A stretch of DNA of 64,000 bases from Camelus dromedarius. Taxonomy: Eukaryota. Every line of letters starts with the position of its first letter. Position 1 is the first letter of the stretch. The translations under genes were made by a program, and so were the position numbers. Under the pieces are notes generated by a model, which saw only the letters and a list, made by a program, of their open reading frames with translations, did no database searches and was not told the DNA's origin. This document shows, one piece after another, positions 33,440-57,628 of the stretch. The stretch covers positions 31,682,001 through 31,746,000 of the forward strand of contig NC_087452.1 of the NCBI RefSeq assembly GCF_036321535.1, written 5' to 3'.

Positions 33440-33579
33440 NNNNNNNNNNNNNNNNNNNNNNNNNNNNNNNNNNNNNNNNNNNNNNNNNNNNNNNNNNNNN
33501 NNNNNNNNNNNNNNNNNNNNNNNNNNNNNNNNNNNNNNNNNNNNNNNNNNNNNNNNNNNNNNNNNNNNNNNNNNNNNNN
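33440..33579. other. Assembly gap (140 N)
   Basis: Run of N. Confidence 1.
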
Positions 33580-35569: not shown

Positions 35570-36495
35570 CCAAGCCAAGCCAAACAAAATGAAGCACACT
35601 ATAATGGCAGTATGTGAAAAGGACATAGGAGTCCCAATGGCCAAAGCCAGAACAATCTGAGCAACAAAATACAGCAGTATTGGATTATAACCCAAAGTAT
35701 AATATACATATCCCTGAGTACATACTGATACAAATAATTGAATAAATAAGTAGGAGAGGATGAGTAAATCTCCCACGCAGAAGAACTCCGAATAATATAT
35801 GTAGATACTCTATCCTTAAAGAGGGAGGGGGCATAAATCCCCACTCATTAACTATGGGCTGCAGAGAGTGATTTCTTTCCAAAATTTACAGTATGAAAAG
35901 GGAGGAAAAAAGAGTAACTTTTCTCTTTCTGGAAAAGCTTGACAAACATTAACTTAGCCAGGTGACCAAGAGAAACATCAACATCAAGATAAAGTGATGC
36001 TCTGTTGATACATGTAACTTTGATTTGATGTAATGAAAATGGTCCTTCACCTGTGCGGTCTTACTCCCTCAAACCTATAACCCCAGTCTAATCATAAGAA
36101 AAACATTAGACAAATTCCAATTGAGGGACACCCTACAAAATACCTGACCAGTACTCAAAACTGTCAAAGTCACCAAAAACAAGGAAAATCTGACCAACTG
36201 TTAGAGCCAAGAGGAAGCTAAGGGCACANNNNNNNNNNNNNNNNNNNNNNNNNNNNNNNNNNNNNNNNNNNNNNNNNNNNNNNNNNNNNNNNNNNNNNNN
36301 NNNNNNNNNNNNNNNNNNNNNNNNNNNNNNNNNNNNNNNNNNNNNNNNNNNNNNNNNNNNNNNNNNNNNNNNNNNNNNNNNNNNNNNNNNNNNTACCACA
36401 CTTATGTAAGATGTTAATAATGGGCTTGAAGTCTCTGCAATATGTTCACAATTTTTCTTTAAATCTAAAATTATCCTAAATTAGAAGTTTAAGAA
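35570..36495 (+). mobile_element. L1MC-type 3' UTR, interrupted by an assembly gap
   Basis: gtattggattataacccaaagtata, cctataaccccagtctaatcataagaaaaacattagacaaattccaattgagggaca, aaatctaaaattat. Confidence 0.7.
36229..36393. other. Assembly gap (165 N)
   Basis: Run of N. Confidence 1.
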
Positions 36496-48806: not shown

Positions 48807-50028
48807 TGGACAGGCTGGAAGAGGAGAGAGAAGGGCACGCATTGGGGGATCCACTTTAGCTGGCTACTGAGCGGTTCCGAGTCTGTGGGGGAATCCCGAC
48901 CATCTAGCAATAGAAACAAAACCTTGAAACTTCAATTCTTTGCATCGCTGGACCAAGACGTTCCTTGAATGAGATTCCGTGCACGCTGGTAGTTACAGGA
49001 AGACACAACAATCTTCAAAGCATGTGAGGAGGGACGTTGCAAATGCCGGCTTCTACAAGCAGCTCAGTCCGAGATTTCCTAACCGAGCAGATGCTCCCTT
49101 GAAACGGTTACCAAGTTGTTTCACTGGATAAGTGCTGGGTAAACAGCTTGTTGAGAAATTTTTAAATAAATAAGCTTGTTCGGCCCCGCCGCCGCAAGAA
49201 TAAACAATGATTTATTTGGGAAAATACGTGTCGGTGTGGCCACAACCGTCCCCCGGAGGTAACAGCTAGAGAAGGGGCTCAAGGAGCATCCCGCGGTTGC
49301 CAGACTAGGCTCATGTCGCGCCTGCTGGGCGGCTAGTGCGGGGCCGGGCTGGAGAGCTCCTCAGCCGCTCGCTCCTCAGGGTAGCGCACGGGCTGCCGCT
49401 CCCGGCCGGGGCCGCCCGCCCAGCTGTCACCGAGGGCGCCGCTGTCTCGGAGCTTTATTCGTTGTCACAAGCCGTGGTAGCTACCTCCCGGGCGGCCGCC
49501 CCGCGCGGTGACTGCGCCGGCGAAAAGGGCGAGCGCGCAAACCGGAGCCGGGTCACGCGCACTGAGACCCAGGGAGACTGCGGCCGCGGGAACCATTGCT
49601 CAGCTGACCGTTGGCAGACCGGGACCGCTAACGGCCGCGCGCCCGCCCCGCCCCTTCTCGCGCCATCCGCGCTATCGGCCCGCCCCTCACCTCGCCCCGC
49701 CCCTCACCTCGCCCCGCCCCGTCTCGCCCCGCCTTTTCCTCTCGCGCCACCGGCGCCCAACATCGCCCTCGCCCCGCCCCTTCCTCTCGCCCCGCCCTCC
49801 TGAGAGCGCGCTGGTGTCTGGAATCAAGCCCGCGGAAGACAGCCCAGAGGCGGGGCGGAGACCGTCGCGCTGTGGTGACGTACTGCCGCCGGCGCGAGCG
49901 GGTGACGCGACAGGGCCCGTTGTCTGTGTGTGGGGCTAGGGGCCCCGGGGGCGGCGGGGGCTCCCGGCGGGGGCGGCGGTGGGTCGGGAGGGCCTGGACA
50001 TGGCGCTGAGGGGCTGCCCCGCGGGAAG

Positions 50029-57628
<7,600 letters not shown>

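Follow-up and report, generated by a model that had tools for sequence, protein, structure and literature searches.

The window analysed here, a stretch of 64,000 nucleotides of Camelus dromedarius DNA, carries BAP1 on its forward strand, and the promoter, leader and first exon of this gene lie together in a CpG island. The start codon was checked by joining exons 1 to 3 (50029-50065, 50164-50193 and 50303-50357), which gave the BAP1 N-terminus. Reading of the sequence and a scan of the window both place another ATG upstream of it, at 50000-50002 on the same strand, in the context gacATGg with G at -3 (49997) and at +4 (50003). This ATG opens the frame ATG GCG CTG AGG GGC TGC CCC GCG GGA AGA TGA, ten codons long, whose TGA (50030-50032) shares two bases with the BAP1 ATG (50029-50031, context aagATGa) in the overlap ATGA (50029-50032). 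With an in-frame stop on the strand of the main AUG, it is an upstream open reading frame (uORF) in the usual sense of the term. A preliminary description of this DNA had reported the ATG at 50000, its strong context, the ten codons and the TGA/ATG overlap, all of which our reading confirms. It had also noted no other AUG from about 49870 onward; this holds and can be extended, as the window scan found no further ATG on the forward strand of 49313-50000 (686 nt upstream).

49200-50149, no strand assigned: CpG island with the BAP1 promoter, leader and exon 1
50000-50032, forward strand: ten-codon upstream frame from ATG 50000 to its TGA; position, length and frame common to human, rhinoceros, rat and echidna
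50029-50065, forward strand: coding part of BAP1 exon 1, ending with the first base of codon 13, with the splice donor at 50066

The stop-start layout taken alone is not unusual and does not go beyond chance: when the 130-nt leader was shuffled 20,000 times with its dinucleotides preserved, one or more upstream ATGs arose in 69% of the shuffles, and in 16% an upstream frame closed precisely on the ATGA overlap. The upstream TGA is moreover not an independent feature, because it is forced by the BAP1 Met1-Asn2 codons (ATG AAY), which are unchanged in all nine vertebrates compared.

Indications of the transcript start conflict with one another. The GC skew changes sign, from about -0.59 to positive values, at about 49800-49860, that is 140-200 nt upstream of ATG 50000, and the human annotation gives a leader of 130 nt in which c.-30 is position 101 and the upstream ATG is at +102 of the transcript. 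Both put the ATG well inside the leader, whereas the human editing data described below suggest that the part of the leader before the ATG is scanned by few productive ribosomes. Shares of the words of the stretch found in sequencing runs, RNA runs as well as runs of unknown kind, top out at 0.62 in many cases, a ceiling that may be a filter effect. Folding of the RNA from 49935 to 50065 gave -61.7 kcal/mol (z = +0.62), no better than shuffled sequences.

Other features were recorded in and around the island. GC-box-type, C-rich tandem repeats lie upstream of BAP1 at 49675-49733 and 49775-49799, in the part of the island with a skew of about -0.59, and consist of a 17-nt unit (TCGCCCCGCCCCTCACC) in 2.7 copies and of a 13-nt unit. 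The 7-mer ATGGCGC occurs twice in the 64-kb window, at 50000 on the forward strand and at 49666 on the reverse strand, the two copies pointing apart within one CpG island; the reverse copy opens a 12-codon frame (MAREGAGRARGR), and no counterpart of it was found within 600 nt upstream in eight other species. G-quadruplex-type motifs (four runs of at least three G) occur on the forward strand at 49969-49992 in the leader, ending 8 nt before the upstream ATG, and at 50073-50117 at the start of intron 1. A 2026 paper describes binding of RBM5 to G-quadruplexes in the human BAP1 promoter; human single-base changes over c.-70 to c.-30 are nearly all neutral in the editing data. In the rhinoceros, an opposite-strand PHD-finger gene (L003:1-451, minus strand; PF13771 and PF13832) terminates about 1 kb before the BAP1 start, so that the BAP1 promoter of this species is probably shared and divergent. 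The window also contains two runs of N, at 33440-33579 (140 bases) and 36229-36393 (165 bases).

Conservation of the BAP1 leader

Full-length BAP1 proteins were found with the exon 13 piece of the window (56028-56504), and the genomic loci encoding them were then compared: rat (L001), echidna (L002), white rhinoceros (L003), saltwater crocodile (L004), mousebird (L005), thorny skate (L006), python (L007) and spotted gar (L008), a set without tenrec, opossum, chicken and coelacanth. The preliminary description had pointed to a near-identical leader in human BAP1, and correctly so, as human and window are identical at 65/70 positions (c.-70 to c.-1) with no indel and have the same ATG (c.-29), frame and stop. 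By eye, the differences fall at c.-61, -54, -45, -44 and -14. This agreement between two species says little, because intron 1 is also identical at 82/98 positions. The difference at c.-14 (C in human, T in the window) turns upstream codon 6 from Arg in human into Cys in the window, and it also creates, at window 50014-50016, a CTG in frame with BAP1 that lies 15 nt upstream of the ATG and is absent from human. The corresponding human change, c.-14C>T, has a neutral editing score.

The upstream ATGs of the eight other loci are as follows, positions being relative to the BAP1 start.

Rhinoceros: ATG at -29, gacATGg; ten codons, ending in the ATGA overlap (MALRGRPAGR)
Rat: ATG at -29, gacATGg; ten codons, ending in the ATGA overlap (MALRDRSAGR)
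Echidna: ATG at -29, gacATGg; ten codons, ending in the ATGA overlap (MAQRPGPGGR)
Mousebird: ATG at -28, gacATGg; crosses the BAP1 ATG, TAA at +6 to +8 (MAARPGPREDE)
Crocodile: ATG at -28, gacATGg; crosses the BAP1 ATG, TAA at +6 to +8 (MAAGSGPREDE)
Python: ATG at -28, gtcATGg; stop at -7 (MALRPD)
Skate: ATG at -20, gtgATGg; ends in ATGA (MESGART)
Gar: no upstream ATG close by

The ATG at -29 and the ATGA overlap are common to five mammals (window, human, rhinoceros, rat and echidna), and a shift of 1 nt removes the overlap in mousebird, crocodile and python. An alignment of mammalian leaders had been suggested in the preliminary description as a check on the conservation of AUG, frame and stop: the ATG turned out to be kept well beyond mammals, whereas the frame and the stop are kept in the five mammals and differ in the bird, the crocodile and the snake. 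A further upstream ATG, within gATGACGCG, is present in mousebird at -79 (L005:1422-1424) and in crocodile at -73 (L004:14527-14529), in both cases in the frame of the -28 ATG. In the crocodile gene model the first exon is a different one (L004:1501), which precedes the canonical BAP1 exon 1 by about 13 kb; the canonical start with its CATGGCG block is at L004:14600.

An alignment of six amniotes (window, rhinoceros, rat, echidna, mousebird and python) contains two invariant blocks of interest.

49999-50005, forward strand: CATGGCG, the sole invariant run of at least 3 nt in the leader (-94 to -5), with a YY1-type core, GCCAT, on the other strand
50025-50036, forward strand: GAAGATGAATAA, invariant block at the BAP1 start that takes in the -3 A (50026) and the bases of the upstream TGA

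Outside these two blocks about 23% of the leader columns are invariant, and an invariant run of 7 nt would be expected with a probability of roughly 0.003 over all positions, a figure that ignores shared ancestry and alignment bias; CATGGCG is accordingly unlikely, on the alignment, to be a product of chance. Crocodile, outside the six-amniote alignment, carries the same block. In skate and gar CATGGCG is found at -121 and -302 respectively, with none at -29 in either. Conservation thus covers the motif, together with its strong context and its distance, and leaves out the frame, the stop, the overlap and the peptide. ATG 50000 would accordingly be the centre of an ancient CATGGCG element placed 28-29 nt upstream of the BAP1 start codon, and selection would have kept this element and its distance rather than a reading frame, a stop position or a peptide.

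Saturation editing of the human leader

Every single-base change of human BAP1 from c.-70 onwards has been scored by saturation genome editing, with the growth of HAP1 cells, which need BAP1, as readout (Waters et al. 2024, PMC11250367). As a null reference we used the start-lost and nonsense changes of exon 1, which score about -0.11 to -0.21 (mean -0.17). Significant scores were obtained for 11/210 leader changes (c.-70 to c.-1):

c.-29A>C, c.-28T>C, c.-28T>G, c.-27G>A, c.-27G>C and c.-27G>T, upstream ATG: depleted, -0.018 to -0.023
c.-25C>T, C of ATGGCG (window 50004): depleted, -0.018
c.-43G>T, new in-frame ATG in human (window 49986): depleted, -0.019
c.-3A>C: depleted, -0.053 (31% of null)
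c.-3A>T: depleted, -0.095 (57% of null)
c.-22T>G, upstream codon 3 (window 50007): enriched, +0.017

Depletion is concentrated on the upstream ATG, with 6/9 changes affected against 2/192 of the others from c.-70 to c.-4 (Fisher p = 2.7e-8), and its size is 8-11% of null in the direction of loss of function. The remaining scores around the motif are less uniform: c.-28T>A is not depleted (+0.010), the changes of c.-26G range from -0.005 to -0.009 and are not significant, the nine changes of the GCG that follows the ATG are all zero or negative with one (c.-25C>T) significant, and the four preceding bases (c.-33 to c.-30) are neutral. It is to be noted that the upstream-ATG scores lie near the assay threshold, about 3 standard errors from zero, that some library pairs disagree, and that a separate analysis judged the standard errors given for these data to be unreliable. 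In this region the fixed protective edits are in the coding part, away from the upstream ATG. Our search of the text and supplements of PMC11250367 found no mention of the upstream-ATG signal, and the tables examined contained no leader deletions.

Changes at c.-3 have a different basis. None of the three alters an amino acid of the upstream frame, which makes the depletion of c.-3A>C and c.-3A>T an effect on BAP1 itself through its Kozak -3 position (window 50026); c.-3A>G is neutral. Ribosomes that make BAP1 would depend strongly on the -3 A of its AUG. The expectation that variants in these 33 nt could matter is borne out in human cells, where effects are measurable both for the upstream ATG (about 10% of null) and for c.-3A>C/T (31-57%).

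Two explanations of the upstream-ATG depletion were considered and dropped. An RNA structure in which CAU pairs with the main AUG is predicted, and it fails to explain why all three changes of the upstream-ATG G are depleted. The CA at 49999-50000 was ruled out as an initiator element, the human c.-30C changes being neutral.

The upstream ATG might also have no function at all, its weak scores being noise or a local artefact of editing. About half of mammalian leaders carry upstream ATGs, the layout found here arises in 16% of shuffles, and scores some 3 standard errors from zero, with disagreeing library pairs and questioned error estimates, are what such a bystander could show. Against this, the leader on either side of CATGGCG diverges from monotreme to snake but the motif stays unchanged and at a fixed distance, the 6/9 depleted changes fall in a single codon compared with 2/192 elsewhere in the edited region, and the protective synonymous edits sit in the coding part and not near the ATG. 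We therefore consider a functionless ATG improbable.

Changes that alter the structure of the upstream frame, as opposed to its ATG, had little effect. Removal of the upstream stop by c.4A>C, c.4A>G or c.4A>T, after which the frame would read on 58 nt into the coding sequence before meeting a TAG in exon 2, was neutral in each case (0.001, 0.001 and -0.005). Early stops introduced into the upstream frame (c.-5G>T and c.-2A>T) were likewise neutral, and so were new upstream ATGs in 4/5 cases, namely c.-62 and, in strong context, c.-50, c.-40 and c.-35, the ATG at c.-40 being out of frame and overlapping the BAP1 start; the fifth, c.-43G>T, is the depleted one listed above.

Possible translation through the upstream frame

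The preliminary description had envisaged leaky scanning or termination-coupled backward reinitiation. The latter, taken as a main source of BAP1, would have ribosomes end translation at the UGA and step back by one base to begin again at the BAP1 AUG, as at viral AUGA or UAAUG junctions. The ATGA overlap of window, human, rhinoceros, rat and echidna invites this idea, and a short upstream frame favours retention of initiation factors (review PMC10275272). However, c.4A>C/G/T all remove the UGA and are all neutral, so that BAP1 output is independent of termination at the overlap; the overlap itself is lost in mousebird, crocodile and python by the 1-nt shift, and the TGA is forced by the Met-Asn codons. 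Comparison with the calicivirus and influenza B systems that depend on a TURBS points the same way. The ATGA-type four-base overlap of these viruses is also present in the BAP1 leader (PMC10275272), but the viral junctions follow a long ORF whereas the BAP1 upstream frame has only 10 codons, and they carry a UGGGA tether, complementary to 18S rRNA, whereas the BAP1 leader has no UGGGA (no TGGGA in 49899-50032) and loss of its stop has no effect in human cells. The BAP1 overlap is not conserved outside mammals. Viral junctions need their tethering element and are 3-20% efficient even so, and where reinitiation follows a uORF, the codon used for it is one beyond the stop, in the downstream direction (PMC10275272). 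The upstream frame is thus real and shared with human, but termination-coupled reinitiation is not supported; in human cells it is already largely refuted, and we find it barely credible as the main source of BAP1.

The preliminary description had further expected most ribosomes to enter the upstream frame, and had suggested a conserved dosage control. If the majority of productive ribosomes had to pass a newly made strong upstream AUG, the scanning model predicts a several-fold loss of BAP1, and no such loss is observed: the new ATGs at c.-62, -50, -40 and -35 are neutral in HAP1 cells, while a single change of the Kozak -3 base reads 31-57% of null. The neutrality of the strong new ATGs implies either that most productive HAP1 transcripts start near or after about c.-35, or that upstream AUGs are poorly used. 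As for dosage control of a simple repressive kind, it predicts more BAP1 when the ATG is lost, and what is observed is weak depletion, as for loss of function.

A classical repressive uORF can nevertheless be reconciled with depletion if excess BAP1 is mildly harmful to HAP1 cells. A sizeable share of ribosomes would then be captured by the upstream frame, whose end is too close to the BAP1 AUG for restart, BAP1 would be made by leaky scanning, and loss of the upstream AUG would raise BAP1. Several observations suit this scheme. An ATG with G at -3 and +4 is found at -28 or -29 in every amniote examined; the amniote frames have 6-11 codons and end between -7 and +8, which is poor for reinitiation; the annotated human leader includes the ATG, at +102; and in human, the -3 G>C, -3 G>T and +4 changes of the upstream ATG trend negative and -3 G>A does not, as Kozak context predicts. 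In addition, a 2026 study found that inhibition of eIF4E cap binding raises BAP1 protein synthesis with mRNA unchanged, and named uORFs as a possibility, raised as an untried idea (PMC13262746). The scheme has difficulty with the strong new ATGs at c.-50, c.-40 and c.-35, which are neutral in an assay where a Kozak -3 change gives 31-57% of null. Their neutrality implies that upstream AUGs capture few BAP1-making ribosomes in HAP1 cells, and with so small a capture the loss of the native AUG cannot raise BAP1 enough for toxicity. Nor does the scheme agree with the neutrality of c.4A>G, which is expected to raise initiation slightly, or with the pattern of near-cognate codons, CUG being the most depleted and AAG not depleted, and it leaves the invariant GCG after the ATG without explanation.

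The 5-codon uORF in the leader of TP53BP1 V3 (PMC10193022) offers a useful comparison. Like that of BAP1, it is a short frame in good context whose stop is too near the main AUG for efficient restart, so that the main protein loses the ribosomes that translate it. Removal of its AUG raised main-ORF output in reporters (PMC10193022), whereas the BAP1 effect is weak and opposite, in the direction of loss of function, and added upstream AUGs had no effect in BAP1 (4/5 neutral). On balance we regard a repressive uORF as a less probable explanation of the BAP1 data, and as the main rival of the reading preferred below.

A proposed YY1/TISU-type element in the BAP1 leader

The reading that we prefer, at a probability of roughly 0.45, takes CATGGCG for a YY1/TISU-type element with a mild positive effect on BAP1 expression, the short frame being a by-product of it or a weak damper. 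What we observe is the sequence, its conservation and the published fitness effects; YY1 binding, the transcription start site and the direction in which BAP1 levels change are what we infer from them. The TISU consensus is SAASATGGCGGC (PMC3177215), and the window matches it as follows.

49996-50007, forward strand: TISU-like 12-mer GGACATGGCGCT, 9/12 against SAASATGGCGGC, in full agreement over positions 5-10 and with mismatches at positions 11-12

Mousebird and crocodile (GGACATGGCGGC) match at 11/12 positions and python at 8/12. In TISU elements, positions 5-12 are needed for transcription and YY1 binding and positions 1-4 are not, and in 36% of TISU genes the element precedes the main start codon (PMC2518114). 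The BAP1 motif has the ATGGCG core in sense orientation in common with TISU, and the ATG of TISU is likewise often an upstream ATG. TISU elements are found no more than about 30 nt downstream of the transcription start (PMC3177215), whereas the BAP1 motif is at about +100 in the human annotation.

According to this scenario, CATGGCG would mildly favour BAP1 expression, most likely through promoter-proximal binding of a YY1-type factor, and might also serve as a TISU-like initiator on transcripts with short leaders. Since the motif holds an ATG, it would always open a short frame ending within 8 nt of the BAP1 AUG, and this frame would divert at most a modest share of ribosomes. BAP1 would be made by ribosomes that do not translate the upstream frame, either through leaky scanning or from transcripts starting close to the motif.

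Several lines of evidence argue for a YY1/TISU-type element. The invariant run comprises the seven bases CATGGCG, more than an ATG alone, and it is conserved while the frame differs between mammals, bird and crocodile, and python; its presence at -121 in skate and -302 in gar is a further point. The editing footprint, strong on the ATG, weak on the GCG and flat on the four preceding bases, fits the requirements reported for TISU (PMC2518114). Changes to the structure of the frame (three losses of the stop, early stops and 4/5 new ATGs) are neutral, and the neutral ATGs from c.-62 to c.-35 in particular would fit transcription starts close to the motif. Other observations are at odds with it. 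The human annotation places the ATG at +102 and the GC-skew switch lies 140-200 nt upstream. The fourth base of YY1 sites, a G that corresponds here to c.-26, is critical, yet the c.-26G changes are not significant, and c.-28T>A is not depleted. TISU positions 11-12 are mismatched in mammals, a selected upstream start codon would likewise show up as a conserved ATG flanked by G at -3 and +4 in all amniotes, and the weak scores lie near threshold in a data set whose standard errors have been questioned. A literature search returned no paper on an upstream frame, a TISU element or a YY1 site in the BAP1 leader, and none that reports initiation by ribosomes at the upstream AUG.

A more elaborate version, which we think quite improbable, would make CATGGCG a two-level switch, acting both as a YY1 site in DNA and as a TISU-like, cap-dependent initiator in the RNA of short-leader transcripts. 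BAP1 is known to form a complex with HCF-1 and YY1, and this complex could feed back on the promoter of BAP1 itself through the YY1 site, while the use of the TISU-like initiator relative to the BAP1 AUG would shift with eIF4E activity. If true, such a switch would explain the rise in BAP1 synthesis under inhibition of eIF4E cap binding.

Discussion

Non-coding variants close to the start of BAP1, a dosage-sensitive tumour suppressor, are difficult to classify. Our analysis suggests that the constrained unit of the BAP1 leader is a 7-nt CATGGCG motif, about 300 million years old, and not the stop-start overlap. New here are the pattern of conservation, an editing signal that had passed without remark and the evidence against a stop-start reading; the type of element is itself ordinary. 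Changes of the upstream ATG behave as very weak loss-of-function alleles, at about 10% of null, in human data that are published but had drawn no comment, and within the same 33 nt c.-3A>C and c.-3A>T, at 31-57% of null, deserve clinical attention. CATGGCG is also a concrete candidate for the rise in BAP1 translation under eIF4E inhibition. Where an upstream ATG forms part of ATGGCG, its role in a promoter or initiator motif may come before its role in opening a reading frame.
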